From: Lepidodermella squamata
Lineage: Eukaryota > Animalia > Gastrotricha
Direction: 5' to 3'
Assembly: GCA_047495785.1 (NCBI GenBank)
Contig: JBLDXI010000004.1
Span: 62,001 to 126,000 of the forward strand
DNA length: 64,000 nucleotides
Shown here piece after piece: positions 1,640 through 62,788 of the stretch. A program made the translations under genes and the position numbers. The notes under the pieces are model-generated. The model worked only from the letters and a program-made list of their open reading frames with translations. It was not told the DNA's origin and did no database searches. Position 1 is the stretch's first letter. The number at the start of each line of letters is the position of its first letter.

Positions 1640-4410
1640 GGCGGTATGCACCGTCGCCTCGCCAAGTGCCGCTTTCATTGCCACGGCTGTCGCTTCTGTC
1701 ACAAAACATAAATTGTAATTTAAAAAAATTGACATTTTTCATGTGCGAGGCAATCAGTTTCCATCTCCCCGAACGTCAGCACACCGCTTTTGATGACTTT
1801 GAAGGCTTTGTTAGGGCCACCGCCCGCTAAAACCGCGCGTTTTCTGGATACAAATAAATTGATAAATGTTAAGGTGGAAAGATATTGAGCAATTTTTTAC
1901 ATTGTAAATCTCGCTGTAGGCCGTCTCAACCTTGAGACGGCAAACTGTGCCCGGCGTGCGGCGCTCTTCGTAAATAGCCTCAGCCGTTTTCAACATTGAA
2001 GCGTAACGAGGACCTTGATCTTTGTTCATTCTCCATTCAGCCTTAATAACCGAAAAACAATGCAAACATGATGATTGATTCAGGAACAAATTAATTTTCT
2101 ATATCCACAAGGAACTCATAAGATACCTATATGAATTTAGGAACTTGAAAATAAAGCTTACTCCCAGTCTCAGCCTCTCGTTTTCGGCATTGACAGCGGC
2201 TTCATCTGCAGCTGCCTTCGCGGCAGATTTCCGATTTGAAATCTTTGCTTTGCTCGAGGAGCGTGGTACAGCAGTGCAATCCTCACTCGTACCTGGAGCA
2301 TCCACGCCAGGACCATCCAAGGCCACAACTACGTCAAGGCCAAGCTCGGCCAAACCTGAGGCGAGAAAACGGCCATCATAGGGCCAGCCTGGGCAGGACC
2401 AGCTATGAGAGGGCAAGCCACAACAGGAGCAACAACCGATGTTGCAACGGTCGTAGTTGTAATCGCTGTGTTTGGACCAGCTGTTGTTGCCGACCCAGCC
2501 ACGCCAAGATTATTTGTGCCGGGATCAGACTCGTTCTGACCAGCCGCAACTCCAGCCAGGCTGACAGTGGATTCGTCGAACAGAATGCCTTCGATGCCTG
2601 GGTTATCGAATTTCATCTATCAGCAGAACGAGAAAGAAAGAAAATTTACCTGCTTCGTGATTTCTTTCTCCCGACTGTTCTTCTGTAAAAAAATTGATGG
2701 AAATTTTGGCTCATTAATTTGCTAAACAAACCAGCTGAATCTTGTACAACTTACGCAACACCTGAGGAGAGAGCCTGAGGTTGATCTGAAAAATCATAAT
2801 TTATTCATTTTCCACAGAAATCGATGACACGAACTGGATATTTAGTAACTGCGATTATTCAATAAAAATTACCAATATTGTCAGCCTCCATTGTCTCCAT
2901 TGGGGCGGCACCTGGCTGAGATAGATCGCCAGGAGGCTCTGAACCGGCCGGAATTTCACGACAAAAAAATAGCCCTGATTTACCAGCGTATTAGAAATGG
3001 CCTCACTGAGCATCTGAGATCACAACAAACAATTAAAGCGTGACTTTCACATCTGACTGATGTCATACCTGAGGTAAATCGCGGTAAAGTTTTTTGAATC
3101 GATCTTCGATATGCCTATATCGATATGCGGGAAGCGAGTAGTCGAGTGGTCACAGCGTCTCACTGGCTGCGAAGAGGCACGGGTTCAATCCCCAGAACCG
3201 CACAACGTCAATCTTGCGTCTCCGCACAACGTCTGCATTCTTCTGCGGTTCTGGGACCGTAAATCAAGCTGCCATGAAGAGTCATGCGGCCAACTGGAGC
3301 CAAGGATTTAATCCTCGAGTGTGAAAGCTGCTGGTAATTCCCGCCAAGCAGTTCCTCCGAGACCGCGGTTCCCTTCCTCCCGGTGTAGGACGCCATTCAC
3401 CGGCAATCAAGAGATGGCTACTCGGTGCGAAAGCCTGGGGACCATGGATCGATGAGCAATAATCGGCTCATGTGTAGATGACTCTTAGGCCTCATATATG
3501 TGATGACATGTGATCCAAGTGCTAAATGTCGAAAGGCGAATCGCGCAATAAAGTATGAGTATGAGTATGAGTATAGACTGTGTCAAACTTACAATCCACT
3601 TGACGCATAACGTATCCAGTTTCCTTGTCCAACGCTTCCTGAACAAGAAAATTTCGCACGTGAAAAATAATTAATTCTTAAATAAGGGCAATAGTGACCT
3701 ACTGTAACGATTTCACGAAATTCTGAGGGGGTCATTTTCTGCGGCTAAAAAAACATGATGAAGTTGGACATGATTTGGATGAAGTTGAAAATTTACTTCT
3801 TTGACAGTAGCCGGCGGCTTAGCTGCGATCACTGGCTGATTCACCTTTTCAATCAATTTCTGGCCGCTTTCGCCGATTTCATCCAAGCTGACGTTGACGC
3901 CGGCGCAATGCAGGATCGCCATGGTAACCTATAATATTATTAGCTTGAAATTTGCAAGTCTTTGAAAAAACTCTTACAGATTTTTGCTCTTTCGATAGAA
4001 CAGGGGCTGGTTTAGGTTTTGGATTGGACTGCGCCTGGGCCGATTTAGGCTTCGGTTTAGACGGCGCGGGGACTTTTATTTCGGGACTTTCAGTCGATTC
4101 GGCATTTCTTGGAGGGCAATTGTTGAAAGTGACATCTGGCTCGCCAATGTCCGGAAGGTCCAAGTCGGCCTCGGTGTCTGCCTTGTTGTCAACCTCGGTG
4201 TCGGCCTTGCAAACGGTATTGGACTCGGCCTTGGCCTCGGCCTTGGAGTCAGCCATCAATCTCGGCCTTTTGGCACTTGATTGCTTATTGGCCTGAGGGC
4301 GAGATTCTTTCTTAGCCGAATCTTCGTTCGAGACATTGGCGTTTTTCCGAGACGAATTCCTAGTTGTTATCCGAGAATTATTTGACCTGCAATAATCAAA
4401 ATTAAACAAT
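1640..4410 (-). other. Possible multi-exon gene or relic of unknown product (low-complexity Ala/Thr/Pro-rich exons)
   Basis: GC-richer coding-like blocks (1926-2040, 2162-2618, 3590-3650, 3713-3925, 3977-4385) alternate with short AT-rich stretches carrying minus-strand GT/AG signals. No recognisable domain. Confidence 0.3.
3128..3576 (+). mobile_element. tRNA-derived SINE
   Basis: Pol III A-box-like TAGTCGAGTGGT and B-box GGGTTCAATCCC in a tRNA-like head (3128-3202), a GC-rich body, then AATAAA and a (GTATGA)n tail at 3553-3575. Confidence 0.75.
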
Positions 4411-20719: not shown

Positions 20720-23700
20720 GCATATCGATGATTTTGCGCTAAAGGCGACCAGCGAGAAAAAACCTCTATACAGAGTACTGCGCACTATAAACAGTACTAC
20801 GCACTATAAACAGTACTACGCGCGCGCACAATACTATGAAATATACTTATAGCCCGCATTCAGTGTGAAAAATAATGAATGCACTGGACAATTGACCAAC
20901 AATACTGAGCTTTTTGTGGATGTTTCCATGAAATTTTCGGATTACCTGGTGGAGAAGAGTCGAACGTATCCAGAAATTGATAAAAATGCATGTGTAACCG
21001 TGGGTTTTCTGCCGTTAGGCGACCTTATAGCGATCCGAAAGCGCAAAAACCTTGGAAAAATGCACCCACTGGCGTTTTTGGCGGCGCTTCTTCCATAAGC
21101 AGAATGGGTTCAACCACAGGTTTGTCACATTCCCTAGTAGAGCACATAAAGGCTTTGTGGGGAACCAAGAAATAGCTAGTTAATATGGTGGTTATCCACG
21201 GCTTTTCAGTCGTTTCCCTCCCGGCTTGCAAATCAGTGAGAAAGTGAAAATTTGGTGTTTTCAGTCGCCCTTATCTCGAAAAAACCCATGGTTGCACCAT
21301 AGCTTTTTGTTGTCAAATTGGAGACGGCGCTGGGAGGAAGGCTTTGACAGGAAAAGCAGCAAGGATCCCCACATCTTATCCACGACTTTTTCATCGTGAT
21401 TAGCACTCACTTCGTCCTACCCAACATCTCGAAAATGCATGACCTTGCGTCTTTTGGAGTACTGCTGCAAGAAACGGAATGGGTTCAACTACAGTTTTGT
21501 CAAATTCCCTAGTAGAGCACAACAAGATCTTACTAAGGAAGTAAGAAATTGCCAGTAAATGTAGTGTTTATCCACTGCTTTTCAGTCTTTTCCCTCCACT
21601 TCCGAATCAAGTCCGAATCGAAGGAAAAGTGAGCATTTAGGATCTTTCATCGCACTCATCTCGAAAAAAACCATGGCAGCACCGTAATTTTTCGTAGTCA
21701 AATGGGGGAGGCAATTGAGAAGAAGGTTTTAAAAGGGAAAAAAGCAAAAACCACCACAACTTATCCACGACTTTTTCGTAATGTTTAGCAATGGCATTTC
21801 AAGCACAAAATCGAGATTCGGAGCCGTTCTATTTTGAAACCGCACAACGCGGAGACTTTATTCCAAGTCTCACAAGTTGATAAGAGTGCCTTCTTCTAAA
21901 AGGATAACTAATATGCCGGTGATACCATGAATTGGGGTATGCATTCCGCCCTGAACCGTTGCCCTGACCGCGGCAACAAGACGCTCGAGATGCGGACCCA
22001 TACCATTTAAATCCCTGGTATCTGTGGACTAGCGTAGTACAGTTCGGTTTCCGATTATCCTTCTTGACTCTCATGCTCGCTTGCATCAACTTAAAGAAAA
22101 TACGGTGGTAAAACCAGTAGATTTTGCTAATTACTCCTGCGGAATGCTCTTTGTGAGATGTAAGTAAGTTGGCTTCCCTTTGATTTAGTAGGAGTGGTAA
22201 AGGTACCATTTTGGCACTATGGTAGTCTTCACTTTGTATCAAGAACGCGGACAAGATTTACAAAATGCCCACAATGGCAGTTTGATTCATTGTTGCGGCC
22301 GCGGTTGGCCCTTGTTCTTGGCCTTGATCTTGCAACAGCATGAGTGCCTACAACATGCGCCACCGCACCACCGACAATTGGCCTCTTTGTCGAGTTGCGC
22401 TGCTGGACTGCCTAGGGATCGGGATAACTTTTCCCCGTTGGCGCTAAAACGTGATAGAGTGCCATCTAATATGGCTAAAAATCCTTGCTTTTGAGTCATT
22501 TCACTCAACGGTGCACTTTCCAAACCGCGGAAAAACCTTGATCCGTCATTTTTCAACTGCGTCAATCGCGTTCTATTGTTGGCGCCGCCCACCGTCAAAT
22601 TTTTAACTTCATGTTCAAAGAGCAAAGTAGCTTGCGTGTGCCTGTAGAATGGGAAGCATAATCTGGGGGCAGCTGGTTGTATGTAAGTTGGGTAGGTTGC
22701 TTTTGGTTAGGACCAGAGGGGAGACTCCCGTAGCCCGATACCTCCACATCCATCTCCTTGTAGTTCGATGTTGTGAACATGTAAAGCACTGGGGCCCCGC
22801 CAAGGCAGGAGATGACGGTCACTCGTCACTTTTAAACCAAGACCAAGTCTCCCAATTTGCTGGTAGCTAGTTAGCTAACGCGTGGAGGCTTTCCTAGACG
22901 ATCGTTTTACACTCGCCGAGAGTCACTTTCAACGACAGCAGGGCGTACGCGACCCGACCCAACATTTGCCGTGAATTACGTTGCCCGCTACCGCCACGGG
23001 GAGACTGCCGTTGTCGCTTGAACAGTAGTAAGGTCTACCATCAAAAGACTCATTTGGGTAATTTAGTTAAGCTCGGTGGGTGGAAGGTTTTAGAGAACTA
23101 AATCGTTCAGCCAAACCATGGCTGCAACTCGAAAGCGAGAAAAGTTGCCAGTGGTTATTAGTACGGCCGTGCATGCCGCTGCAGGATCCAGCCCAAGGGC
23201 CAACAGAGGCCGCTACAATGAATCAGAGGGCCATTGTAGGCCACTACAGTGATACTTTTCCGACTAATGGTTTTACCACCAAAATGTCTTGGATACGATG
23301 CAAGTTAAAACGGGTGTGGATACTATGATGGGGAACGCATCTTTACTAAGCAGCTAAACGGAAACGAGCAACTGAAATCGGACTAAAATCGGATGACTCC
23401 TTACCTCAACCATCTTGTTACCGCGGTCTGGGACCGAATGGATAGCAAATCGTGGTAGCACCCGCATATTTGCTATTTTATAAGAAGTATGCGCTTCCTT
23501 CAACTTGTTACAAGTGAAATAAGGGCTCTGCTGTTTAAGGTCTCGGAACAGCCCAATTTTGAAACTCGATTTTGAGCTTGAAATGTGATTGCCCATCAGG
23601 TCGAAAAATTCGTGGATAAGTTGACGTGGTTCTTGCTGTTTTCTCTTTTAAAACCTTCTTCTCAATCTCCTCTCCTTTTTGAATACAAAAGCTTATGGTG

Positions 23701-37736: not shown

Positions 37737-39100
37737 TTGAAGAAGCGCTTCACGGCCCTATTATTTGCAACAGCGACCTATACAGGCGCCGAGCCTCGAG
37801 ACGGCAAAATTTGCCAAGCGGCTATGCAGGTCGCGGTTGAAATTGTCAACGCGCGACGCGACATACTGGGTGACTACAACATTAACGTCGACTACCGTGA
37901 CGAAGCATCGAGTGCTGTTTTATCGCCGCGCAATTTTAATGCCTTCTTGCGTGATTCGAGCGAAATCGCCTCACTTGATATAGATAATAGGACATTCATT
38001 GCGCCGGCCTTTGTCGGCAATGCACTGGCGTTTAACCGAATTTCACGGTTGGTTAATCAAATGAAAATGGTTCAGTTCACGCCTGGCTGCAGCGGTGACC
38101 AGTTTACGGCTAAACGGGACATTTACCCGGCGCTGTACCGAAATCGCATCCCAGCCGATCTGCAATACATACAGCTGCATTTTTCATCGCTGAAAAATCG
38201 TGGCGACAAGTCGGAATCTTGAACGCTGATATCGGCACCAAGACACACTCTGCGGTTTTGAGGGCTGGTAAACAGGTCGTCAACAACCCGATTATTCAAG
38301 ATTTCGATGATGCGACTATGCTGGCGATCAGGGCGAGTGATGCGCGAGTATTCATTGTTCCATTAGGGGTTCACGCTTTTCCTGTGCCAGGCGTTTGCTT
38401 ATGGACTGAGGCGGCCGAATTACTTGTTCATAACGGCTACGTCGAATTTCATCGACCCGTATGCGAGCGATTTGAAATTGCCGATTGGAAATTGCACAAG
38501 AAACATGTTCATCGAACAGGTGAGCAAATGTTTTTTGAAAGAAAATCAGGAAAAAATTAGAAAAGAAAAATGTCTGATATAGGGCAAGGTTACCTAAATC
38601 TGCATAAAAAATTTCCAAACGCTTTTTTTCAAACGCTTGTCTTTCCATAACCATAAGGTTCTCCGGGCTCAAATTTTGACCATGAACAGTCAGAACCCAT
38701 ACCAGTAAGCTCACAAATCTCATGAGCCAATTCCTCACCGTTAGGGAGCCATCGTTGGTGAAAGTCAACAAAGGCAAAAATTTAAAATCGCTCGAGAGTG
38801 CCATAAATCTGCATACAAGCTTCACTTCTGAACCTAAACTGGAATTTTTTTATGCAGATTTAGGTAACCTTACCCTACATTTTCTCATACATTTTTAACT
38901 TTTTAATTTTAGAAAAGTTTGGAAAATTCCATCCGGAAATGATATTTTTGTAATTTTGAGAATTATGAGAATGATACAATTCTATTTTTTAATTAGAAAT
39001 TTCTAAATGTTTTCAGGTTGGAATCACATTTTGGGGCGGTCCTTTTGATTTCGCGCTCGAGAATACCGGTCCAAGCGTGTTTGGCTACGACGTGAATGGC
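37737..39100 (+). pseudogene. Class C GPCR / GABA-B-receptor-like Venus-flytrap (ANF-receptor) domain, frameshifted and truncated by transposons
   Basis: ICQAAMQVAVEIVNARRDILGDYNI, IYPALYR, then after frameshifts WRQVGIL, SDARVFI, CQAFAYGL..PNYLFI and NCT. The next exon (39017-39100) is cut by a CCCAG-element end. Confidence 0.75.
38582..38875. mobile_element. MITE with TA TSD
   Basis: GGGCAAGGTTACCTAAATCTGCATAAAAA ... TTTTTATGCAGATTTAGGTAACCTTACCC, with TA on both sides. Confidence 0.85.
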
Positions 39101-42286: not shown

Positions 42287-44443
42287 CCCAGATAAAAATC
42301 CGTCTGCCCAAATGCATGTTTTGGCCAAATCCTCGGCCAAATTTCTTGTTGAAGGGATTCAACCATAATCATGTGGAATTTTGGTGCTATTTTTCACAGA
42401 ACTCATTTTCGGGAAATTCAGCCATCGTTTTAGCAGCAATTTTAGACGAATATCGAGTTTGCACTTGTTGGGTAAAATATTGCGAGAAATATTTGGCTGA
42501 AGCAGCTTCGCGATGAATATGATGAGTAATTTGAGCGAAATAAGTTTGTTTCAAAATAATTTACCATTCACTCAAAGAAGTGCCGATTCATTATAAACTG
42601 AAGGTTTCGGCCAAAATGACTTGAACGGTCAGCTAAAAATTACGCAGCTCGCAGCTTCTGTACAGAATACAGCCTGGCCAGTGGCCAGAATCAATTCAGA
42701 AAATCGTAATAATCCGGCTATATGATTTCCGTTGTTAATAGCCTGCATCGGTCATCTCCAAGCTCCACAACCTTTCTTTCCGACTACACCAGAATTATTT
42801 TGAATTATTATTTCCGTATCACTCTGGTTTTCAGCAGGTTCAATTCGATATTCGCAATTTGCTATTTGCAATGAAGAGCGCGTTTATCAAAACAGCAGCA
42901 GTTTCGTGGATGCGGGATTTCGATCTCAATTTGAAAAAATTGAAATTAACAAAATTAAAAATTGAGCTCTTCATGTAATTATTTGAATTTTTCCTACAGA
43001 GAACACATTTTTCGGAAGTTTTCTATTATTTTTCTTGAAATTTAAAGATCTTCTTAAATTTTTCTTGCAATTTAGAAAAATTTTAAAATTTTAAAAATTT
43101 GGATTTTTAAAACTTGAATTTGATATTTTTTCAATTTCTAGAAATACTATTCCTGAAAATGTGTTGTTCTGAAAATTATCTAGAGAATAAAAACCGCTTC
43201 AAACTAATGTGTTTTCAGGGCTAACTGGGAAATTATTCCTACGGCTCTATCACATATGCTATCATATGCAGAACTCAAAAAACCAGAGTAACAAAATAAA
43301 ATGAAATGAACGTGAAAAAGTCGAAATGAGACGCGACCACGTTCTGCGCCATTGTTGTGCAACACACAGCTGTGTTACGCCACAGCTGAAGTCAGCGCGA
43401 CGCATTTTATCAGTTTTCATTTCATCTTTTTTCTGTCTGAAACGCAAGTTATTTCTTTTCCTTGGCCCGGAATTCATTTATAACTTTAAATCATTTGTCT
43501 GCACTTGATATTTTTGTAGTAGCACCGGTGCTAGGCAAACAGCCGCCAATGTGGTCTGGCCAGTTCTCCTTCTAACGCCAATCGACTGCGGTAGCAGCGA
43601 CGCATTTTACGTAATTTTTTTGTACCATTTTAGAAAAAAATCTTTAAATCTGATTTTATTTAAATTGCTTCTCAAGCCTTGAAAAAATAATTCAACCCTA
43701 ATTAAATTTTCTTACTATTTTTATAGCTCGAAATGCGCCATGATGACTGCGACTTCATCGCCCGGTTGGTCACTAAATTCAAACTCTAAATCAAGGCAAG
43801 TTATTCCCAAGAAATTGCGGTTCAGGAAAAATTGAAATTAAATTATTAAATTTCAATTTTACGGAATTTTAATAAATTATAAATCTATTTTTTTTTAATT
43901 TATAGGTCGATGGTTCGATGGCAATGCCGTACCAATGCCGCCAATGCCAATGCTAACGGCTATCATGGCTATTCAAGTCTGAGCGGCATCAGGAAGGCTT
44001 TGAAAATGCATGCATCTCGAACATTTAGAACTTGAATTCGAAATTTCACTTTGCTATGATTAAGATTATCTGAAGTTTAACTTGGATATTAATTACTAGA
44101 ATAAAAACGCAAATAACTTTGTTCTGACTTGAGCAACTTGAGGAACCAAGTGACATGAAGCCGAGCAGTTGCATTACAGGGTTGTAGTCTACTTGAATGA
44201 AGAGCAAAGGTGATATGAGCAAAGGTGGTTTTGGCCAAATTTATAACTCCGAAAGCAGTTTCGCCGAAATTTTCATCTATCAGTTTGGCCGAAATTTGGT
44301 GATTTCAGCAAAAGATTTAGCTGAAATTTTGGCCGAGAATGTTTTTCGCTGATTCTTAGGTCGAAGTGTTTCGCCTATTTGGGGGTATCAGAAAGATGAG
44401 CCAAATTTTAGGCCGAGATTATCGCGGTAAATTTTCATCTGGG
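42287..44443 (+). mobile_element. 2.1-kb non-autonomous CMC/EnSpm-like element, copy A
   Basis: TIR CCCAGATAAAAAT ... ATTTTCATCTGGG; 2-bp TSD, CA. Confidence 0.88.
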
Positions 44444-44468: not shown

Positions 44469-46571
44469 CCCAGATAAAAATCCGTCTGCCCAAATGCACG
44501 TTTTGGCCAAATCCTCGGCCAAATTTCTTGTTGAAGGGATTCAACAATAATCATGTGGAATTTTGGCGCCATTTTTCAGCGACCTCATTTCAGGAAATTC
44601 AGCCATCGTTTTTAGCAGCAATTTTAGACGAAAGTCGAGTTTGCACCTGTTGGCTAAAAAATTGCGAGAAATATTTGGCTGAAGCAGCTTCGCGATGAAT
44701 ATGCTGAGTTATTTGGGCGAAATAAGTTTGTTCCAAAATAATTTACCATTCACTCAAAAAATTGCCGATCGCAATACACTGAAGGTTTCGGCCAGAAAGG
44801 CTAGAGTGGTCAACTTAAAATTACGCAGCTTTTAAACAGAATACAGCCTGGCCAGATATCGATTCAGAGAATCTATCGTAATAGTCCGGCTATGATTTCC
44901 GTTGTTAATAGCCTTCATCAGCCATCTCCAAGCTCCGGAACCTTTCTTTGTGACTATACCGCAATTATTTTTAATTATTATTTATTTCCGTATCGTCTAA
45001 GCTGGTTTTCAGATTCGATATTCTACGCTATTTACAACGGAGAGCGCATTTATCAAAACAGCAGCTTCGTGGATGGATGGATGCGAGATTTCGATCTCGT
45101 TTTGAAAATTGGTTAACAAAAATTAAAATCAAAATTAAAATTAAAATTAAAATTAGAAATTGAGCTGTTTATGTAAGTTATTTGAACTTTCTGACATTTT
45201 CCCTACAGTGTAATAATTTTACGAGAATTTTCTTAAATTGTAGAAATTTGAAATTTGAAATTTTTAAAATTTTAAATTTCTAGAAATCTAATTTATGAAA
45301 ATGTGTTGTTCTGAAAGTTATGTAGAAAAACCGCCTCGAACTAATGTGTTTCCAGGGCTAATTGAGAAATTATTGCAACGGCTCTATCACATGCTATCAC
45401 ATGCAGATTTAAAAAATCCGGAGTAACGAAATAAAATAAAATGAGCATGAAAAAGTCGAAATGAGACGCGACCACGTTCTGCGTCATTGTTGTGCAACAC
45501 ACAGCTGTGTTACGCCACAGCTGAAGTCAGCGCGACGCATTTTATCAGTTTAGTTTTCATTTCATCTTTTTTCAGTTTCAAAAGCAAGTTAATTCTTTTC
45601 CTTGGCCCGGAATTAATTTATAACTTTAAATCATTTGTCTGCACTTGATATTTTTGTAGTAGCACCGGTGCTAGGCAAACAGCCGCCAATGTGGTCTGGC
45701 CAGTTCTCCTTCTAACGCCAATCGACTGCGGTAGCAGCAACGCATTGAACGTAGTTGTTTTTTACTATTTTCGAAAAAATCTTGAAACCTGATTATATTT
45801 AAATTGCTTCTCAAGCCTTGAAAAAATAATTCAACCCTAATTAAATTTTCTTACTATTTTTATAGCTCGAAATGCGCCATGATGACTGCGACTTCATCGC
45901 CCGGTTGGTCACTAAATCAAGGCAAGTTATTCCCAAGAAATTGCGGTTCAGGAAAAATTGAAATTAAATTATTAAATTTCAATTTTACGGAATTTTAAAA
46001 AATTATTAATCTAATTTTTTTTGAATTTATAGGTCGATGGTTCGACGGCAATGCCGTACCAATGCCGCCAATGCCAATGCTAACGGCTATCATGGCTATT
46101 CAAGTCTGAGCGGCATCAGGAAGGCTTTGAAAATGCATGCATCTCGAACATTTAGAACTTGGAACTTGAATTCGAAATTTCACTTTGCTATGATTAAGAT
46201 TATCTGAAGTTTAACTTGGATATTAATTACTAGAATAAAAACGCAAATAACTTTGTTCTGACTTGAGTAACTTGAGGAACCAAGTGACATGAAGCCGAGC
46301 AGTTGCATTACAGGGTTGTACTTGAATGAAGAGCAAAGGTGATATGAGCAAAGGTGGTTTTGGCCTAATTTTCAACTCCGAAAGCAGTTTCGCCGACATT
46401 TTCATCTGTCAGTTTGGCCGAAATTTGGTGATTTCAGCAAAAGATTTAGCTGAAATTTTGGCCGCGAGAGTTTTTGGCTGAAATTTGGTCGAAGTCTTTC
46501 GCCTATTTGGGGGTATCAGAAAGATGAGCCAAATTTTAGACCGAGATTATCGCGGTAAATTTTCATCTGGG
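44469..46571 (+). mobile_element. 2.1-kb non-autonomous CMC/EnSpm-like element, copy B
   Basis: Same TIRs; 2-bp TSD, AG; collinear with copy A. Confidence 0.88.
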
Positions 46572-47585
46572 AGGATCTTTGAGACTGATATTTGGTTGAA
46601 ACTCGTCTTCGACATGTTTCTTCGACATACTTTCGACATACTTCGACATATGTCGAAAATAATGTCCATAACAGGGCAACATGCAGAAATTGATGTTCAT
46701 ATCTAGCATATAATTTTACAATATAAATTTAATATGTAGGGTGGCGCCATAGAGAACGAAATCGGGTGGCGCATTGGTTCGAGCTATTCTCGAAGATCCT
46801 AATTCTGAATTCAAGCTAGGGCCCTAACTCAGGATGTTAATTCGGCTAAAGCTAAGGCCACAGCTGACCAGGGCGTTGAATTTGTTCAAGTCGAGGACTT
46901 GAACAAATTCAACGCCCTGGTCATGCTAGTCCGGATTTGCATTGTTCAATTGCATTGACCGTGAGGAGGAGCCATACCCGCGCGTTGCGTGTGAGCGCGC
47001 GGCCAAACTTCGGCCGCGAACAATAGGAACTTCGGTCGTCACGCTGCGCGCGCGCGTAGAAAATGCCACTGATAAGGCCTCCGAAGTTCTGCTATTTCTC
47101 TCCGAAGTTTCTACTTCGCTCTCCGAAGCGGTCGGTCTCCGAAGTAGTTTGTGAACGCACTATTACCTGTCGTTAAATCGATGAGAGCGCTCTGATGTTG
47201 CGGCCAAAAGGTATTTTGTGCTGTCATAGATGAAATTCGCTTTTTTAAATATTTAGCACGCAAATCGGTTGAAGCAAATCGGTTCACTTTTCCCATCGTT
47301 AGGTTACGGCAAAAATAATTATTTGTTACCCAAAATTTACAAATAATTCCAATATTTCTGATTTTTTCAAAAAATGAAAATAGTCATTCCAAACAGCGCA
47401 TTTTACCGCAATATCTGCTTGTTAAAAAAATTGCAGAATTTTGTATAACATTAAAAGGAATTTTTCGTTTTAATATTTTTTATAAAATTAAATTTTTTAT
47501 TAACATTTTTAATATTAATTTAATTAATTTAATATTTAAAAATATTTAAGAATGCTTCTTGTATTTTACCTCTCCGTCCCACTAG

Positions 47586-49193
47586 ATTGGTAACGTTAGG
47601 ATTGCGGTTCGGCATAAATGCCAGCAAAATACTTGCAATGAAGGACCACATTGGTTTTCGATAAGTCTCGAAAGAAAGATTTTACGAAATAAGGAGAGAA
47701 ATGGGTATTTTTCATCCGATAAACAGCATCGATGACGGCCTGGGGGCTTATCGCTCCATTTCTTCAATCGCAAACGTATGGGCACATAGAGGTGAGCTGT
47801 CACCCACTGCTCCCAATGATATTCGATTTCAGGTTTTCAATTTTTTAATTTCATGCGAATGACCGATTAACCAAGAAATTCAGGTTGATGGGCTGGCTGG
47901 ACGCACCTCTTCATCTAATCCGATAGTTACATCTTACGTTTGTGTTGCTAGCCGGAAACGCAAGGTTGGCATGGATGACGAGCATCAGTTTGCTGTCTAT
48001 AACGAAGCTGAGTCCAGCGAAAATTTTCGGAAATATTTGCAATCGCCTGTTGATGAACTAGTAAAGCTAGTTGAGCAGGGTATATCAGTCGATGGAACAA
48101 ACTATTCATTTAGGCTCCTGACTTGCTGTGATTACCCCGCTCTTGTGAAATTGTTCGGCTGCGGGCATCAAGGAGCTCATCATCGATGTGTTATTTGCGA
48201 AATCGACATACGTAATCCCAACTCACCGGCCAAACGTCGTCGGTTTGATGAGTATTCACCCGACCTAGCCGGTAAGTTGGGCTGGTCAAAGGACTATGGG
48301 CCAATGATTCGACTTGGACCTGCTAAACTCGTCATCCTACCCGATTTTTTTCATATGCAAGTTAATCTTGCCAAGCCCTTGCTTACTCAGGTAATGATTG
48401 GACTAAAATTGAAATTTTTGAAAACAATTCTGGAAATTTTTCAGATCATTTCAAAGTTGAAACTTTTCGGCCAAAAAGAAGCTGTCAAACAATTGACTGA
48501 ATTATTGAAAAATGACTTGAAACCGAGGCCGGCTCTTTCGCCTAAAATGAAAAAAAATCTCAAAAAATCGAAGCTCACTATCGACGTGACTCGTAATTCG
48601 AAGGGCAAAGTCAAAGTTAACATAAAAAATTCGAATCATTACGGCATCGTCGCGGTAATTTTTGTGATTTGTTTTTAATTTTTGAATGAATTTCAAATTT
48701 TTAATTCTAGGCTTTTAAACGATTGACGCAACGTCTGGCTCAGCACAGTCTTGCCGATGCGTTATTTTTGCCGCAAAACTGGCGACGACAAAAGCCATTT
48801 TCAAGTGTTATATCCCCAGTAATTGCTAAAATCCGGGAAAATCAATTTTTAACCGCATTGGCAGGTCTTCGGAAACTCTGCTTCGCAACATGTGCAGCGT
48901 TCGACGACATTAAAGAAAATCGACCGACGGGTAAAGGAAGATTTTTCATGCCGAGATTTATATCACTCTGGCGAAAAAACGTTGGTCCAGTCACTTCATA
49001 CGCCCATTTACTGTCGAGTCATGTTTACGAGCTGCTTGAAAAAGGCATTAATCTGGCTGCTTTGTCAGCTGAGACAATTGAAATCTTGATTAAGGAGCTA
49101 CGGTCTACTGTCAGCACTCAGACTACAAACTGGCGGCCTTTGTGTCCTCAACTTTTAACTATCCAAAACATGAGAGATAACTCGAAAATATGA
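47586..49193 (+). pseudogene. RAG1/Transib-like DDE transposase, copy 1 (exon 1 mostly deleted, in-frame TAA near 47662)
   Basis: VDGLAG, CCDYPAL, RCVIC, PDFFHM, VTSYAHLLSSHV, SAETIE; same intron positions as copy 2. Confidence 0.75.
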
Positions 49194-49456
49194 TTTGCTC
49201 TTAATTATTTGAATTAGGATTACTTTTATTTTCTATTATTTTTTCGAAAAAATGTTTGAGTGAAATAAAACACGGATTGAAACGATGTCTCTAATGTGTC
49301 TCATGTTAAGCTGTCGCTGAAATTATTCGAAAAAATATGATTGTTTTATTCAATATTCTCAGTCAATTCGTCGCTTTTTATTTTCCAGCTCATTTTCCAA
49401 AAATCACATAATTTTTCGCTACAATCTCACAGTTAACGTCAAGACTTTTCAGAAAA

Positions 49457-50390
49457 TCACTTCTTCTTGTACACGTACTCGCCCTCAAATCTGTCGAAAT
49501 GCAATTCGAACTTATCCTCCGCGGACCAAGTAAAGGAGAAAAGGCCAGCACGACACAGCTGATCGATCCTGACAATTTGACGACAAATGGCGTTCAAACT
49601 TCGGCCCAACTCAAAGTCCAAATGTTCATCTTTTTGGCAGTTACGAATCCAAAACTTCAACAAACCAAGCGGAGCAGTTTCTACTTTCCGCCGTTTAGCG
49701 AAAAATGCGAAAACATGGCGAAGACGATTGCGGTCGTCATAGGTCCACTCCATGCGAGAATTTGTGAAATAGACTAAATTTGAAGAAAATAGAATAAGAA
49801 TTTGAAAAATAGCTACAAGTCTCACTTTTATCATATTTTCTTGACGCGGCTCTGATAAAATTCCAAGTTCCAAAGGCAGCGCCAGATAAAGTTGAATTTA
49901 AAGTAGAGTTGGTTAATTCAAACATTTCTTGTTCTTCTTGTTGCTGCTGTTGCTGTGGCTGTTGCTGCGGCTGTTGCTGCGGTTGTTCCTGCGGCTGTTG
50001 CTGCGGCTGTTCCATCGGCTGTTCCATTGGCTGTTGCTGCGGCTGTTGCTGCGACTGTTGCTGCGGCTGTTGCTGCGGCTGTTCCAGCGGCTGTTCCAGC
50101 GGCTGTTCCAGCGGCTGTTGCTGTTGCTGCTGGTGTACTGCAGGAGGTAGATGAAATTGGTCGTTATTGTTGTGAGCAACCGCGCCAGATTTCTTTTGCT
50201 GCTTGCCACGCGCGTTCTCACCAAAGAATGACCTAATGTCCGCATGTCGTTTGGAGCGGTTAGCTTGCTGTTTTTCCAGAGCGGCTTGGCGATTTCGATC
50301 CTTTTCGAGGGCTTTTAATTGTTTTTTTCTCTGATTTTTCGACAGAGTCTTGGGCGTTGAGTGATTTAAATCGCCGTTGTCTTCTGCCAT
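49457..50390 (-). CDS. Transposon partner protein, copy 1: basic N-terminus, Q/P repeats, C-terminal Myb/SANT-like domain (exons 50390-49826 and 49773-49457)
   Basis: The GT-AG splice keeps the frame. EWTYDDRNRLRHVF...LGRSLNAICRQI is conserved with copy 2. Confidence 0.75.
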
Positions 50391-51385
50391 CGAAATGCGC
50401 TCACAAAATGACAGACGAAGAAATGACCGAATAACGCAGAGGCCGACAGCGCGACCTCACCACCACACCACCACCACCATCTAAACATGCCAGTACTGCA
50501 CACATGATAGCTAGCAATAAATAACTGAGGATGATTCATCTAGGTCACCCTGCAAACCCGGACTAGTATGGAAGAGGCTTTGCCTGAGTCTCGGCTATCG
50601 CTTGGCACGGTCCTGAAAGAGAAGTTCAATAAATTCAAGCCATGGCTGACGCGGCAAGGTAAATTTGGATAATTTTCAAAAACATTGTATTCAGCATTCA
50701 AGAATAATTTAAAAAACAAAATTATTGAATTTAAATTAAACGAACTTAAATGTTCAAAAATTTCAAAAATTTATCTACAATGAATTTAAAATGTTTATGT
50801 AAGGGGTCTAGGCTGTATTATTAATATTACTTCATTTATCCTTCAACTATATTATTTGCCGCAAGCGATTAGGCTAGTGCCACGTGGCGTCGCTGGAAGC
50901 ATGAATGGCGCAGCTTCCAGCGTATAAATATGCGTCAGTTATAATCATTCGGGGCTCGTTACTTCATTGATAGTATTACTTATAGTATTAATAAATCTGT
51001 CGTTGGTGTATTTGCATTGTAGGCCGGGTTTGCAGGGTCAAAGTCCGATTTTTTTTGCCCGGTTGTTTACTGCGTCGTTTATGTGGTGGGGTGGTGGTGC
51101 GGTGGAGAATTCGTATTTTTTGCTGATGTTCCTCATTCATCACAAACCAAATAATTTATTGAGTGAGGATTTTGGATGGTTTGTGCAATTTTCTTTGCTG
51201 ACCTCCTTGACAAGTGAAAAAGGGCCATTGTTAACAAGTACACATAGCGAGAAACAATGTATTTATCGTTTGACCCGAGTTATATCGAACAGACATGACG
51301 AAAAATCATCATAGGAAAGGATTGCAAATAATAAATAATTTTGTGAAAGCATTTGCATCAATATTGCACGATCACGATCATAAAA

Positions 51386-53439
51386 ATGCCAGTTTCATTT
51401 ACTTTTGATGCGGAGTTTGACGTCTCGTCGTTAATGGGATCGATTAGTCAACGGATTGCTAGGATGCCACCAGGGTCAATCGACGATCTTCAAGTTCGCT
51501 CCCGCAGATCGAGGGCGCAATTTGCTCAAGAGAGCTTACTTAAACTGTTACCATCTTTATCACCGTACAGCGAAATTATGGATGGTGCAATAATAAAGCA
51601 CGCAAAATTGTCTGTTGAATACGAAGGTTTTGGGGTGATCGAGGCTGAGCTTCCGTTGGTAAATCCGCTTCCACCGCGCAAGCGTGCGAATGATCTTGCG
51701 AAAAGGTATGATATTAAAGCAAAACTTTCACAGGCGAGAATTCAAGAGCATTCGCGCATTTATTTATAAATCTGATATAATTTAATTTGACGAAAATATC
51801 GAATTGCTACAATTACAATATACGTTCCTCAATAGGCTGGTAACGTTGGGCTTACGGTTTGGCATTAATGCCAGCAAGCTTCTAGCAATGAAGTCATTTA
51901 TTGGCTTCGGCTCGGTTACAAAAGATATGTTTTATAGCATCAGAAATGAATTAGCCCAATTACATCCGATAACGTCATCGCAAGATGGGAAATCTGCATT
52001 TCGATCCATAACGTCGCTTGCGCATAGTTGGGTTCAGCAGGGCATCCTATCGCCACTGATTCCTAATGACATCCGATTTCAGGTGATAACCCTATGTATC
52101 TATGTAACTATGATTGCTTTACTTTTGGTGATTTTATAAGGTTGATGGATTTGCCGGCCGCACTACTTATTCTGATCCTTTTGTGACTTCTAACGTGTGT
52201 GTTGCCAGTCGAAAACGCAAAATAGGGGTTGAAGGAGAAGACAATTATGCTATATTCAATGACGCTGAAACCAGCAAAAATTTTCGCAAGTATCTGCAAC
52301 AGCCGGTTGATGAACTGGTCCAGCTTGTAGAAAAAGGTGTGACGGTGGATGGCACGGATTATTCATTCCGTCTGCTAGTGTGTTGTGACTATCCGGCGCT
52401 TGTGAAGCTCTTTGGTTGCGGACATCAGGGCAGTCACCACCGCTGCGTTGTGTGCGAAGTGAGCATTAAAAACCCGACTTCCCCAGCGAAGAAGCGAAGA
52501 TTCGACCTGTATTCGCCCGATTTAGCTGGGAAGCTTGGTTGGTCGGAGGAGTTCGGGCCGATGATCAGGCTGGGTCCCGAGAAACTCGTGATATTGCCAG
52601 ACTTTTTTCACATGGAGGTCAACTTGGCCAAGCCATTAATCACTCAGGTATTTATTTCCTTTATTTAAAAAAATATAGCTACTCACTGATTTTTTATCGA
52701 TTAGCTATTTTGCAAACTGCGATCATTCGGTCAGAGGGAAGCTATCCGGAAAGTCAGCGAGTTTCTGAAGATGAGAATAAAGGAGAACGGTGCAAATAAC
52801 CAACCTCAAGGAACCAAGGCAACCAAGCTGTCGATCGATGTTCGTCGTACTCTCAAAGGGAAGACTCTTGTCACTATCAAGAATTCGAATCACCATGGCA
52901 TAATCGAAGTAATATTTCTCCAAATTTCTTCAGTTGTTAAAACATTGTTTTGCCAGGCTTTCAAAAACTTGACCGAGCACATGAGTCAAAATTCGCTCAC
53001 AGATGCTTTCTTTCTACCGAAAAATTGGCAAAAGAAAAGGCAATTTACTGCCGGCAATTCAACGTCCGTTTCTAAGGCCAGAGAAACGCAGTTTTTGAAA
53101 GATCTTTCACACCTTCGCAAACTGTGCGTGGCTACTTGCGCTGCTTTTGACGATATACAGGAGAACAGGGCTACTGGAAAAGGAAGATTCTTCATGCCGC
53201 GATATCTGCAGTTATGGAAAACTGTGGTCGGCCGGGTCACGTCGTATGCGCACCTTCTAGCTTGTCATACTTACGATTTGATTGAACAAAAGGTAAATCT
53301 AGCAGCACTTGCAGCAGAAACTATCGAATTGGATATCAAGCAGCTTCGATCGACCATCAGCTCTCAAACCTCTAATTATCGGCCCTTGCCTGGTCAGCTG
53401 CTGAGGATTCGGAACATGAAAGACAGCTTGAAAGTTTAA
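51386..53439 (+). CDS. RAG1/Transib-like DDE transposase, copy 2, ~586 aa (exons 51386-51705, 51836-52082, 52141-52647, 52705-52908, 52957-53439)
   Basis: All four GT-AG splices keep an open frame. Motifs occur in RAG1-core order: VDGFAG, VCCDYPAL, RCVVC, PDFFHMEVNLA, VTSYAHLLACH, AAETIELDIK. Confidence 0.8.
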
Positions 53440-53578
53440 TTGTGTTCCTTTCTTGTGAATAAGTGAAAAAGCTGAATATTATGTGCTTTACTCAATTTAT
53501 TTCATTTATTCATTCTCATGCCAACAAATCTTCAAGATTCAAAATTCTCACCGAAGGAACACAGCGGAGTAATAAATT

Positions 53579-54121
53579 TCATTTTTTCACACTGTACATG
53601 TACGTGTTGCTGTTTTTGTCAAAATTCAGCTCGTACTTATCAGCAGCAGTCCACGTAAATGCGAACAAACCAGCACGGCAAAGTTCATCAAGCTTTGCGA
53701 TTTGACGGCATATGGCATTCTTGCTACGTCCAAGATCGTAATCCAAATGCTTGTCACTCGGTGTGGTAGCCATCCAGAAAGTCAGCAAACGTCGGGGCGC
53801 TGTTGCTAGTTTGCTTCGTTTCGCATAAAACGCAAACACATGTCGTAACCTATTCCGGTCTTGAGGGCTCCATTCGGTACGCGAATTCGCGGCACTGACT
53901 GAAACACAGAAAAATCTAGCTATATTTATCCAATTAAAGTTACGACTCACCTCTCACCTTTATCAAACTGTTTCGATGCGAGACGTATATATTCCCACGT
54001 GCCTACTTCCGCACTTGACAGCGTTGTATTGACAGTCGAATCACCCAAATCGATGAAGTCAATATCATTTCCCTGTTGCAGTTGCTGCTGATGCTGCTGC
54101 TGCTGCTGTTGTTGTTGTTGT

Positions 54122-54153
<32 letters not shown>

Positions 54154-54558
54154 TTGTTGCTGCTGCTGTTGTTGCTGCTGCTGTTGTTGCTGCTGCTGTT
54201 GTTGCTGCTGTTGCTGTTGCTGTTGAAACTCATGTAGCTCCCGTTCTAGCCGTTGAAATTCGATGTCCTGTTGGTGCAGTTGAAACTGCATGTCCTGTTG
54301 ATGTTCGTCGCTGTTGCTGTTGTTGCTGGTGTTGTTGCTATTGTTCTCGCTCTTTTTATTGTTCTTATTGTTCTTCTTGCCGTTGTTGTTGTTGAGCATG
54401 GAGCGAATGTCCGCCTGCTTCTGGTATCGTTTGCCTTGCTGTTGTCGCTGCTGATCAGCTCGCTTTTTCTCAGCTTTCTGCAACTTGTTAAGCTGTTTAT
54501 GTTGTTTCTTGGACAGCGCTTTGGCATCGAGCATTTCTTCCGCGTCTTCGTAATCCAT
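53579..54558 (-). CDS. Transposon partner protein, copy 2, ~306 aa: basic N-terminus, long polyQ, Myb/SANT-like C-terminus (exons 54558-53958 and 53898-53579)
   Basis: In-frame GT-AG splice; EWSPQDRNRLRHVF...LGRSKNAICRQIAKL; CAG/CAA tract at ~54077-54225. Confidence 0.75.
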
Positions 54559-55454
54559 TATTGCTTGTGAGGAGGAGACGAATTAATCGGAAATTGAAAA
54601 GAAAGTTGAATAAATCAAGAAATCAAGAAAATATAAATTGACCGACTGCACGACCTCACGACCGCACCACCGCACCACCACCACATCGTCGGAAATAAAA
54701 AAGCATCGCGCACACACATCGATGAAAAAAACACGTCTGTGATTCATCGAGTTCACTATGCAAAACACCGCCTACAATGTTCCTCTTCTTTTGCGGCTAC
54801 CTTTCATTGGCGCCTGGCGCCGAGACCCGGCTAGGTCTTCATCGGTATTATTTTTCTGATTCTTCGCTGCTTCGGTGAAAGTAACGAGCTACCAAGTGAC
54901 GAGCAACGTCAGATCATTACATTTTTTTTAGATAAATTGACTTCTTTATTTCAGATTATTTATTCGTAAACCCTCTGCCATAATCATAATCACAATCCCC
55001 CAAACACACCGTTCAAAACATACCTATTCCCCACGTAAAGAGACGAAAAAGTCGGAAAATTTAAGACCAATAGGTGACGAAAAGTCGGACAAATAAAAAT
55101 ATCAAATTTAGAAATTCCTCCCGCAGCATCCCGCAGTTTGTTCACGTGATGCGGGACTGCGGGATGACTGCGGGACTGCGGGATAAGGGTGCGGGATAAG
55201 CTGTATCCCACCCGGCCCACCCTACAAACATGATTTTTTGCCAGTATCAATGAGTAAGCATTCATCTTCTCGCAAAATCATTAACATATGCACACTATTT
55301 TTTGTATGGGAGAATGCAGAGAAATTTTTATCACGCTGCAATACACGTGGACGTCCACATGATGAACTGCGGGATGTGCGGGATGACTGCGGGAGGAATT
55401 CGTATATTTATTCCGGTCCACTTTTATTTTTCCCAAATAAACAACCAAATCAAC

Positions 55455-57195
55455 ATGACAGACAGGCGCAAGTCAATTGTCGACGTTCTCCCGATCGACC
55501 CCCGTATCCTGAGCTCCAACGCCATCACCCCGTTCGAGAAGAAACCAGGCTACTCGCTCCGACAGTACCTAGATAACAATGAAGGCACGTGGGAAAGCAT
55601 GGGAGTATACAATCTAACCAAAGCAATCCTGTTGAAAAAGGTGCTGGGCCAACGGGGCTTCGTAGTCACCCGCGCACTAGAAGATCTCGAAGAAGATGCT
55701 TCCTGGAAAAACCTGCGCACGGAGGTAATACGCGTGATCGACGGTGAACCCCCCCACGCCGGAGGAAGCGAAACGTGAAAGGCTCTTCCTACATCAAGGC
55801 GACTTCCCTTTGATCGATTTTGAAGCCAAGCTAGAAGAATGGGGGCGATGGGCGTACCCAAACAACGAAAGAGAGAGGTCGACCTCCATTGTGCACCAGT
55901 TGGTCGCAGGTCTAGCCGACCAGAAATTCAGCCGAGAGTTGGCCATGCGGATGAAATCGGGTGAGATTACCACGCGCAAACAGGTGATTCAGCGCATTCG
56001 GGACCGCGAAACCAGAAACCGTCAGCAATTGAACCACCGGGTGTCAGGAAACCTACCTCCCCCGGTGGCTGCCTACCATCACCCACAACAGCAACCGCAC
56101 TGGCAACAGTCAACCACAGTAGCCCCAGTTGATGACAGCGACCTCATGAGCTTCGCGAGCAGCTACGAACGGTCAAGGCCACCGACACCAGCAATGGTCA
56201 ACATGGTCACACGTTCAGGCGCTAATTACGGCCGTGAAAGTCGACGATCGCAGTTCGAGGGCGACGAAACCAGACGCGTTCAATTTGAACAGCGTGATGA
56301 ACGCATTGAACGTTTGGAAGCCCGCGTCGAGGAGAATCATCGGACCGTACAAGAAACCCGCGAAGATATGAGGGCAGTGAGAGCGCTCCTGGAATCATTA
56401 GCTCGCACCAACGTAGCAGCCACGCCGAATGTGGTGGTCCCGATGTTACCGACACCGATCGCATCGAGCACACCGGCAGAACCGCTGGTTAACCTAACGA
56501 ATTGGACAGGTGACCCGACCTTATCATCCGTATCTTCGACACCGTCTTCGGCAGGCACCACACGCCAAGTGACGCATACGAGCACGCAGTGGACGCAGAC
56601 ACCAAATTCATCAAGGCTGATCACTCCCGGCCAATTGGCAGCTCCTGCCCGCCCCACCCTGTCAAATTTGACGGCCCAAGAATACACCCGTCCCGGAGAC
56701 GCCGCCGTTCGAGAAGCGGCCCAGCGAGCAGCCAACCGCACCCGCTCCAGGTCCCCATCTGGAAATCGACAGGCCTGCAATAACTGTGGCTCCATCGATC
56801 ACGCACGCTTTTACTGCCCCAGGATCGATCCAAGGTTCGCCGACAAATCTTGCTATGTATGTGGCGACCCGATCCTTCGGAATGGCAAGCTAGAGGTCGA
56901 GAATATTGTGAAATTAATAGCCTGGAAAAACCAACCCGACGAGTTGAAATTGCTGGAAGAAATCGACCCGATCGAGGAGCCGCCAGAACCCATCAAAAAA
57001 CCGGTAACTGAGAAGGTCGCAAAAGAGAAAACGTGTAAGGTAACGGCACAGAAGGGTGAACAAATAAACATACCTCCCCAACCAAGTCGGGATGAAAGGG
57101 CAAGATCGGATGTTAAGTCCGGCTCGACAAGACAATCGTCGAGGACCCGCATCCCCAGCACTAAATACAGTGCGGATGAATTTGATCATTCGTAA
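55455..57195 (+). CDS. Gag (capsid plus CCHC knuckle), frameshifted at the C-run ~55749 and fused to an apparent integrase C-terminal tail
   Basis: MHR-like LHQGDFPLIDFEAKL, HQLVAGLAD, CNNCGSIDHARFYC, and a truncated second knuckle CYVCGDP. It ends RQSSRTRIPSTKY, resembling gypsy pol C-termini. Confidence 0.7.
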
Positions 57196-61462: not shown

Positions 61463-62788
61463 ATGGCCACTGAAAAGAAAATTATCTCTGTCGTTGGAGC
61501 AACTGGCCAGCAGGTGAATTTTCTCAATTTAATTGATAATTTAATCTCGAATATAATCTGAATTTCATTTACAGGGCGTAGGCGTTGTCCGAGCGATTTT
61601 GGAAGATCCCAATACCCAATTCAAGGCTCGAGCTTTGACCCGAGATGCCACCTCGGCCGCTTCCAAGGCCTTGGCTGAGCAAGGCGTCGACGTTGTTCAG
61701 GTCGATGCTAATGATGAAGACGCCATAGCTGAAGCTATCAAAGGCTCGTATGGCTTTTACTGTGTTATCGTCTGTTATCGATTGGAATGACCCCGAAAAA
61801 GAACTTGCTCAAATCAAATCAATGGCAAATGCCTCAGGGTTCGCGATGGACCTGAATTTTTATTTATTTTGAATTTATTACAAAAAATGGTACCCAATCA
61901 GATTTTCGGATCCAAATTTGTGAATTTTTAAATAAATTCTGATTTCGTTTCGAAATTTTCGAAAAATTTCAAAGTTGAAATAGACTCGGAACTTAAACTT
62001 TAATTTTTTCAAATGTTAAATCGACTTTTGGGAATTGAGGAAAGTTCAAATTTCCTAAATCTGTGGAATTAAATTATACAATCTAAATTTCAAAAATTGG
62101 AATTTTCAAGACTTTGAATCGAATTGAAGTCAAAATAGGAGGAAATTTGTAGAAAATTGAATGGAATATTGTATCCATTAGGAAAGCTGGTATTAAGCAC
62201 GTTATCTGGTCGACCCTAGATGATACCTCCAAATTTATCCCACTGAGCGATGACCGCATGCCAACGCTGTTCGGAAAGTACAAGGTGCCTCATTTCGAGA
62301 CGAAAGCCTCCTGCGACCACCTCTTCGCGGACCAGCCTGTGACCTACATGATGACGCCGTTTTTCTGGGACAACTTCTACAACGGCAACGTCCCAATCCA
62401 CCGCGGCCCGGATTGCAAACTGTCGACTTCAATACCCGGAGGGCAGATCACCATGCCTGGGTTAGCCGTCGACGATATCGGCCGATGTGCCTGGATCGGC
62501 AAGAGAATCGCGATTTCCAGTGAATTTTTGACATTTCCGGAGTACCTTGAAAAAGTTTCGAAAAATGTCGGGGAAGAAGTCGCCTATCGCCCTGTTCCGT
62601 TTGATGTTTTCCGAAAATTCCCATTCCCTGGCGCGGCTGATCTCGGGAATATGTTCCAGGTCTGGCATGATTTTCCGGATAAAGTTGGGTCGATTCGAGA
62701 CCCGGAAGGGTCGAAAAAACTAAACCCCAGAATGATGAATTTCGATCAATTTCTGGAGAAATACGGCAAGCTGATCAAAATTAATTGA
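61463..62788 (+). CDS. NmrA-like copy C (exon 2 has a 4-bp insertion frameshift near 61767; exon 3 at 62182-62788 is open)
   Basis: MATEKKIISVVGATGQQ; GIKHVIWSTLDD; KYKVPHFETK; FFWDNF; AVDDIG; FPGAADLGNMF. Confidence 0.8.

Follow-up and report, generated by a model that had tools for sequence, protein, structure and literature searches.

What is a transposon that carries a transposase with RAG1-like motifs and, tail-to-tail with it, a second gene unlike RAG2, and does such a pair belong to the line that led to RAG? Antibody genes are assembled by RAG1, an enzyme whose ancestors were transposases of the CMCT clade, which comprises CACTA/EnSpm, Mirage, Chapaev, Transib/RAG1 and their allies. 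The question is raised by a stretch of Lepidodermella squamata DNA (contig JBLDXI010000004.1, positions 62,001 to 126,000; hereafter the window, 64,000 nt in length). There, an original prediction had described two transposon copies at 46922–54779, bounded by terminal inverted repeats (TIRs) and combining a RAG1/Transib-like transposase with a convergent partner in a ProtoRAG-like layout. We refer to the transposase gene as T and to the partner gene as M, numbered by copy.

Our analysis indicates that the two copies are very probably independent insertions, from diverged subfamilies of one rare, autonomous-type cut-and-paste family in the CMCT clade. The lineage is unplaced within this clade; the length of its target-site duplication (TSD) and its weak hidden Markov model (HMM) matches lean toward the CMC side. 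It is a rare two-gene CMCT lineage, undescribed in the literature that we found.

Two Units with Inverted Termini and Subterminal Repeats

The window holds two TIR-bounded units of ~3.7 kb in the same orientation, with 444 nt between them. Each has a spliced gene on the plus strand and a tail-to-tail gene on the minus strand, just as first read. Copy 1 (46922–50570, +; 3649 nt) has TIRs at both ends and homologues of T and M inside. In copy 2 (51015–54779, +; 3765 nt), T and M are both open and both TIRs are present, which agrees with the original prediction.

Each element opens with 5'-CAT and closes with ATG-3', and the TIRs are ~24 nt long. In copy 1, the left TIR (CATGCTAGTCCGGATTTGCA...; 46922–46945, +) matches the right TIR (50547–50570, −) at 20 of 24 positions. 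In copy 2, the match between the left TIR (CATTGTAGGCCGGGTTTGCAGGGT; 51015–51038, +) and the right TIR (54756–54779, −; reverse complement CATTGTAGGCGGTGTTTTGCATAG) is about 19 of 24, with one indel. The right TIR of copy 1 and the left TIR of copy 2 come from inverted-repeat comparison together with a degenerate TIR pattern, and the right TIR of copy 2 comes from TIR alignment. The degenerate pattern finds three of the four element ends and nothing else in the 64-kb window; the right end of copy 2 is too diverged for it. All six ends examined, which include those of a related element on metagenome contig L004 described below, have the form CAT...ATG, and the terminal heptamers are CATTGTA, CATGCTA, CATACTA and CATTATA.

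At both ends of copy 2 and at the right end of copy 1, inverted blocks of GGTGGTG/GTCG type lie 70–130 nt from the terminus. The left block of copy 2 (GGTGGTG-type; 51082–51114, +) is the inverted counterpart of its right block (GGTGGTG / GTCG; 54650–54685, −), and the block of copy 1 (GGTGGTG-type; 50452–50475, −) sits ~95–118 nt inside the right end. These blocks have been kept although copies 1 and 2 are saturated at silent sites, and in contig L004 the equivalent subterminal position is occupied by GAGTGTCG, repeated in tandem about eight times. One further match to the subterminal motif, at 22360–22372, is not close to any element end and was discarded as a likely chance match.

A perfect 28-nt inverted repeat, unique in the window, adjoins copy 1. 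Its arms (46865–46892 and 46896–46923) are separated by a 3-nt spacer, and the second arm reaches just into the left TIR, covering its first two bases. One possibility is a foldback element into which copy 1 inserted; another is an inverted duplication of the flank left by an aborted hairpin-type excision.

A Transposase Gene with Predicted Introns Under Purifying Selection

The transposase gene of copy 2, T2 (51386–53439, +), is open and has five predicted exons (51386–51705, 51836–52082, 52141–52647, 52705–52908 and 52957–53439) with GT-AG introns. The spliced product is 586 aa long, the length given in the original prediction. Judged by its sequence, copy 2 appears structurally intact. In copy 1, translation and alignment to copy 2 outline a transposase pseudogene, T1 (47587–49193, +), with exons at 47587–47832, 47884–48390, 48445–48654 and 48711–49193. 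Here the earlier reading of a spliced transposase gene in each unit has to be amended: T1 is not intact, as exon 1 is missing and a TAA interrupts the frame of exon 2 (translation 'GFR*VS'). With this one stop codon and the lost 5' part, copy 1 is a recently dead element.

Three intron positions of T1 are identical to those of T2, and all introns are GT-AG. Two of the T splice junctions are corroborated because homologues that lack the introns read through them: the related proteins P0002, P0011 and L001 run uninterrupted across the 'RxQ(I/V)DG' junction, and L001 is also uninterrupted across the exon 4/5 junction.

T1 and T2 are 64.9% identical at the amino acid level over 479 residues. The proportion of nonsynonymous differences (pN) between them is 0.23, while that of synonymous differences (pS) is 0.86 and saturated; the corresponding values for M1 and M2 are 0.32 and 0.85. 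The introns of the two copies are essentially unalignable. Given the low pN, the saturated pS and the unalignable introns, copies 1 and 2 represent two old subfamilies that have been under purifying selection and not a recent duplication. The window shows these two deeply diverged subfamilies side by side, and the earlier proposal that the copies keep their introns and motifs under purifying selection is borne out.

The motif residues of T2 are D191, D272, C291/C294, H346, H525/H530 and E547/E550. Among these, D191, D272, C291-x2-C294, H525-x4-H530 and E547/E550 are kept in T1, L001, L004 and P0001–P0005. We consider D191, D272, C291/C294, H525/H530 and E547 (or E550) to be candidate catalytic and zinc residues. 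No DNA-binding finger is recognizable in T.

A Partner Gene Kept Tail-to-Tail with the Transposase

The partner genes are open in both copies. M2 encodes 306 aa (53579–54558, −; exons 54558–53958 and 53898–53579), M1 encodes 293 aa (49457–50390, −; exons 50390–49826 and 49773–49457), and the two have one intron position in common. The stop codon of M2 lies 139 nt from that of T2, so that T and M stand tail-to-tail.

The same pair is found outside the window. Two metagenome contigs (L001 and L007) carry a T homologue that is ~43% identical, on the plus strand, and tail-to-tail with it an M homologue that is 30–36% identical and incomplete where the contig stops. On contig L004 the element is complete: it spans 3248 nt (264–3511), with CATTATAAC... 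inverted repeats at its ends, a plus-strand T and a minus-strand M. The T/M pair is thus conserved tail-to-tail in at least three lineages, one in the window and two in metagenomes, whose M proteins are mutually only 26–36% identical. The original prediction had named a failure of the two genes to co-occur within TIRs elsewhere as grounds for giving it up, and the complete L004 element, along with the pair on L001/L007, speaks in its favor. Between the T and M stops of L004 we also noted a 46-nt tandem repeat (2421–2562; 3.1 copies, 92% matches).

The M protein has a basic N-terminus, a Gln-rich tract and a conserved C-terminal module of ~105 aa. Between M1 and M2 the module is 59% identical (pN 0.26, pS 0.80). 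The middle of M2 is a pure CAG/CAA poly-Q tract of about 50 residues (54075–54236); that of M1 (49940–50140) is Q/P/E-rich, with 12-nt repeats of QQQP/LEQP type. The two tracts expanded independently. Many unrelated public-run contigs stack on them.

No Pfam domain was found in M, and outside the window copies the L004 partner is the only homologue of the C-terminal module found in a family-alignment search. The model of this module has three helices followed by a beta hairpin, with a predicted local distance difference test (pLDDT) score of 62.8. It has no significant match in the PDB or the ESM Atlas (Foldseek E ~1), and its best VIA-align Z of 4.4, to homeodomains, the GT-1 trihelix and the RED subdomain of Sleeping Beauty, is below the noise level of the tool. 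Language-model features score only 0.86 to a Myb_Rap1 cluster, a lead at most. With no Pfam match, Z at or below 4.4 and a Foldseek E of ~1, we did not adopt a Myb/SANT label. The model makes a helix-turn-helix DNA binder a plausible guess. M is certainly not RAG2-like, as had been proposed at the outset, with no Pfam domain and a module of three helices and a hairpin; kelch repeats are impossible in it because its 306 residues are largely low-complexity.

A short motif stands out in the otherwise disordered N-terminus of M, reading QADIRSML in M2 (54394–54417, −) and HADIRSFF in M1. The possible L004 version is GGIKKYF, which MAFFT left unaligned. The motif is weakly like the PCNA-interacting PIP box, which is known from the pogo transposase.

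M might instead have no part in transposition and be a passenger or regulator, such as a repressor, a nuclear-import or chromatin adaptor, or a captured host gene. This would accord with the want of a detectable homologue outside the family and of a significant fold match, with the low-complexity, Q-rich and fast-evolving N-terminal two-thirds of the protein, and with an M1 that is open although T1 is dead. We nevertheless regard it as unlikely, as M has been retained inside the TIRs and tail-to-tail with T in three lineages that have diverged so far in M, its C-terminal module is under purifying selection, T has no obvious DNA-binding domain, and the conserved subterminal repeats at the element ends need a reader.

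A Rare Family Among Public Sequences

T exon 3, searched with HMMER against 1.84 billion representative proteins, returned eight matches, six of them real. The six are short fragments from ENA metagenome assemblies. P0007, a bacterial Calx-beta adhesin, was rejected as spurious, and P0008 carries only the source name of a surface-anchored protein. Protein searches with family alignments gave nothing beyond family fragments, even at E ≤ 10; two scans of metagenome contigs for related loci gave no result, and a related-locus search of bacterial and archaeal genome contigs found nothing. The family is rare, with very few representatives among public sequences.

Contigs of low depth (3–7x) in public run X2, from organism B, are 89–98% identical to stretches of copy 2 and to copy 1 at its right end (50461–53271), so this organism has a close relative of the element. 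In the literature we found no CMC or Transib element described with such a partner gene, a statement that does not cover Repbase/Dfam consensus sequences.

Fold and Sequence Point to the CMCT Clade

The protein that we folded was P0002, a 253-aa relative, ~40% identical, that is equivalent to T exons 2–3 only. The model is of middling quality (pLDDT 62.5, predicted template modeling score 0.67) and shows an RNase-H-type sheet in which strands 1 and 4 end on D70 and D155. In a Foldseek search of the PDB, the top 40 matches were all RAG1, BbRAG1L or HzTransib (best E 1.1e-3, probability 0.97–0.99). VIA-align ranked RAG1 first with a Z of 8.6 (218 residues aligned), followed by BbRAGL at 7.9 and HzTransib at 6.2, and placed the next unrelated chain at 5.0. 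The RNase-H-type DDE core that had been predicted is therefore supported by the model.

To our knowledge, the PDB contains no structure of a CMC transposase, and because of this gap RAG1 is expected to come first among solved structures for any CMCT member. Predicted structures offer a wider comparison. In the ESM Atlas, clusters with Transposase_21, DUF1280, DUF1258 and RAG1 match the P0002 model at template modeling (TM) scores of 0.58–0.63 (DUF1280 0.63, DUF1258 0.59), and Plavaka at 0.48. DUF1258 corresponds to Mirage, DUF1280 to Chapaev and Transposase_21 to CACTA (PMC3985635).

At the sequence level, phmmer and three family profiles run against all PDB sequences gave no RAG1, RAGL or Transib at E ≤ 10, and no RAG1 Pfam family was reported for pieces of T or its relatives. 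The weak matches that did appear are to CMC families: Transposase_21 in T1, T2 and L001 (E 0.0016–0.23, 16–18 bits), the best of which reaches 18.1 bits (E 0.0016) against a gathering cut-off of 28.6, and DUF1280 in L001 only (E 0.042).

The motifs themselves are of clade-wide meaning. The C(2)C and H(3-4)H pairs, CA..TG termini and TSDs of 2–5 bp are common to the clade that has been named CMCT (PMC12730594). Since they are listed for the whole clade, the order D-D-CxxC-HxxxxH-E marks CMCT and not RAG1 in particular. The motif order, the RNase-H-like fold (in the model of exons 2–3), the CA...TG termini and a TSD within 2–5 bp are all present here. The hedged label 'RAG1/Transib/CMC-related' was right, given the fold and the clade-wide motifs. 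The emphasis on RAG1 and Transib does not hold up, in view of the equally good CMC predicted folds, the lack of a RAG1/Transib profile match at E ≤ 10, the lack of a heptamer and the 3-bp TSD.

Could the family nonetheless be an early branch or sister of Transib/RAG1 that independently recruited an unrelated partner, in parallel to RAG1-RAG2? The solved-structure matches are led by RAG1, BbRAG1L and HzTransib. When T2 is set against the RAG1 residue numbers, its spacing is RAG1-like, with 19 residues from the second D to CxxC, an equal HxxxxH and 20 residues from the second H to E550. Language-model features, which overall agree with the clade-wide nature of the fold, score the RAG1_RNase_H/ZnC2 and RAG1_ZnH2 clusters at 0.93–0.97. 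Chapaev (DUF1280) has been grouped with RAG1 (PMC3985635), and 3-bp TSDs occur in some elements of the Transib lineage. Against these stand the uninformative lead of RAG1 in a PDB that has no CMC transposase, the predicted CMC transposases that match the P0002 model equally well, the lack of HMM-level likeness to RAG1, RAGL or Transib at E ≤ 10, weak Pfam matches of T that are all to CMC families, and element termini without a CAC heptamer. On balance we find such a branching quite unlikely.

A more far-reaching version of this idea is a long shot: a deep sister of Transib/RAG1 in which end recognition has passed to a separate small helical protein, with a copy 2 that still moves and is polymorphic in the population sampled. 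If true, two-subunit recombinases of RAG type would have arisen twice, by convergence, and the family would be a convenient natural system in which to ask why enzymes like RAG1 take on obligate partners.

Comparison with Known Two-Gene Systems

Our preferred reading, a two-gene CMCT family, can be set against the known systems that it most resembles. It shares with EnSpm/CACTA a 3-bp TSD, CA...TG termini, short subterminal repeats and a second element protein (in EnSpm/CACTA, TnpA, which binds the subterminal repeats); Transposase_21 is also the sole recurrent Pfam signal in T. However, the termini here are CATTG, CATGC or CATAC and not CACTA, the Transposase_21 scores of 16–18 bits fall far short of the cut-off of 28.6, and T is much shorter at 586 aa. 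Moreover, M is a convergent gene of its own and does not arise by alternative splicing from a transcription unit shared with T, and the DUF4218 and Transpos_assoc modules are missing.

Chapaev and Mirage share with the family the CMCT clade and an animal-type host. Their DUF1280 and DUF1258 clusters are among the nearest shapes (TM 0.63 and 0.59), and one family member has a DUF1280 match (E 0.042). In contrast, there is no significant sequence match to either, and in the literature we found neither described with a convergent partner gene.

Transib, RAG1 and ProtoRAG share the RNase-H DDE core with its zinc module and supply the top solved-structure matches, but show no sequence-profile similarity to T. 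The TSD here reads as 3 bp and not the 5 bp of Transib, and there is no CACAATG-like terminal heptamer. The two convergent genes between TIRs are the only ProtoRAG-like trait, since M is small, helical and unrelated to RAG2, with neither kelch nor PHD. The description 'ProtoRAG-like' thus holds for the tail-to-tail layout and fails for a RAG2-type partner, the TSD and the termini.

PIF/Harbinger, finally, combines a DDE transposase with a separate small DNA-binding protein, which makes it a functional model for M, and has a 3-bp TSD. Its transposase superfamily (PHIS), however, is unrelated, and M is not demonstrably Myb/SANT.

Target Sites and Evidence of Mobility

Copy 2 is flanked by a putative 3-bp TSD, TTG on the left (51012–51014) and TTC on the right (54780–54782). 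The L004 element has an exact duplication, ATG|CAT...ATG|ATG. A further contig, L005, has an L004-type element end beside a different flank, with the TIR preceded by A. This other flank puts the L004-type element at two or more sites and assigns the base preceding CAT to the flanking DNA. Copy 2 and L004 would be explained equally well by a 2-bp TSD if an additional G were part of the element; we rejected this as L005 has the same TIR after A. The TSD is best read as 3 bp.

Public run X1 provides two contigs that bear on mobility. One, at a depth of ~60 compared with ~250 for the filled contigs, joins 51011 to 54780. The 3768 nt missing from it equal copy 2 (3765 nt) plus 3 nt, and the two sides of the joint share 2 letters. 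This joint is apparently the empty site for copy 2. The other (depth 46.6) contains a copy-2-like element with deletions from 52030 to 52213 and from 52274 to 53968 and with filler letters at the joints, and it is a typical non-autonomous derivative of such an element. Together, the empty site and the deletion derivative suggest past, possibly recent, mobility.

It is hardly credible that copies 1 and 2 are not mobile, whether as domesticated host genes or as products of tandem segmental duplication. They are adjacent, alike in orientation and gene structure and under strong purifying selection, and their mobility and expression are predicted from sequence. But each has its own TIRs, their flanks bear no relation to each other, copy 1 is in decay, the apparent empty site and the deletion derivative occur in run X1, and the L004-type element is found at two different sites.

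Evidence That Weighs Against Our Reading

Several points count against the reading of a mobile two-gene family on the CMC side of the clade. As to mobility, the empty-site joint is a single short contig with 28 letters on its shorter side and 80% likeness, and it could be a paralogous site. The TSD of copy 2 has one mismatch (TTG/TTC), and copy 1 has no matching TSD (GGT versus GAA).

As to placement, the fold comes from the relative P0002 and from the equivalent of exons 2–3 alone, and every Pfam match is below its gathering score. A 3-bp TSD does not exclude Transib because some Transib-lineage elements make 3-bp or TA duplications (bioRxiv 10.64898/2026.08.26.747230). The lean toward the CMC side is drawn from TSD length and weak HMM matches, and the D, D and C of T were likened to D600, D708 and C727/C730 of RAG1 by their order.

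As to expression and function, the locus is absent from the public RNA runs that we searched, for which reason the splicing of T and M is a prediction. DNA binding by M is likewise something that we infer, with a weak model that has no significant fold match.

A Putative Mechanism and Its Significance

We propose that T would multimerize on both TIRs, where its DDE triad and two metal ions would nick and release the element. By analogy to RAG1 and Transib, release would probably proceed via hairpins in the flanking DNA. T would then insert the 3'-OH ends with a 3-bp stagger.

M would most likely act in trans as an end-recognition or assembly factor, given that T has no recognizable DNA-binding finger. 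It would contact the GGTGGTG/GTCGG-type repeats 70–130 nt from the ends through its C-terminal helical module and help to assemble T. This role would be analogous to that of TnpA in En/Spm or of the Myb-like open reading frame (ORF) of PIF/Harbinger.

Within the CMCT clade, we know of solved structures or biochemistry only for RAG and Transib. The present lineage is compact, with elements of 3.7 kb, an enzyme of 586 aa and an obligate-looking orphan partner, and it widens the known diversity of CMCT. It is a small candidate system for end recognition, flank hairpins and the need for a second subunit. The picture of RAG origins is unchanged by this lineage alone.

Neighborhood of the Elements

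Just to the left of copy 1, a direct repeat of ~445 nt occurs at 44000–44443 and 46127–46571, ~2.13 kb apart and with 94–100% identity. Either the sequence was duplicated locally or the two are copies of some other repeat.

Right after copy 2, an ORF of 483 aa (55744–57195, +) has two CCHC-like zinc-knuckle motifs by eye, is rich in Pro, Ser and Thr, and has a G+C content of 0.54. It has no Pfam match at E ≤ 0.01; by its sequence features it looks like a retroelement gag. Farther out, one ORF fragment matches Pfam ANF_receptor (37737–38222, +; E 3e-08) and another matches NmrA-like (62258–62788, +; E 1.1e-10). These are probable exons of host genes that flank a repeat-rich patch.

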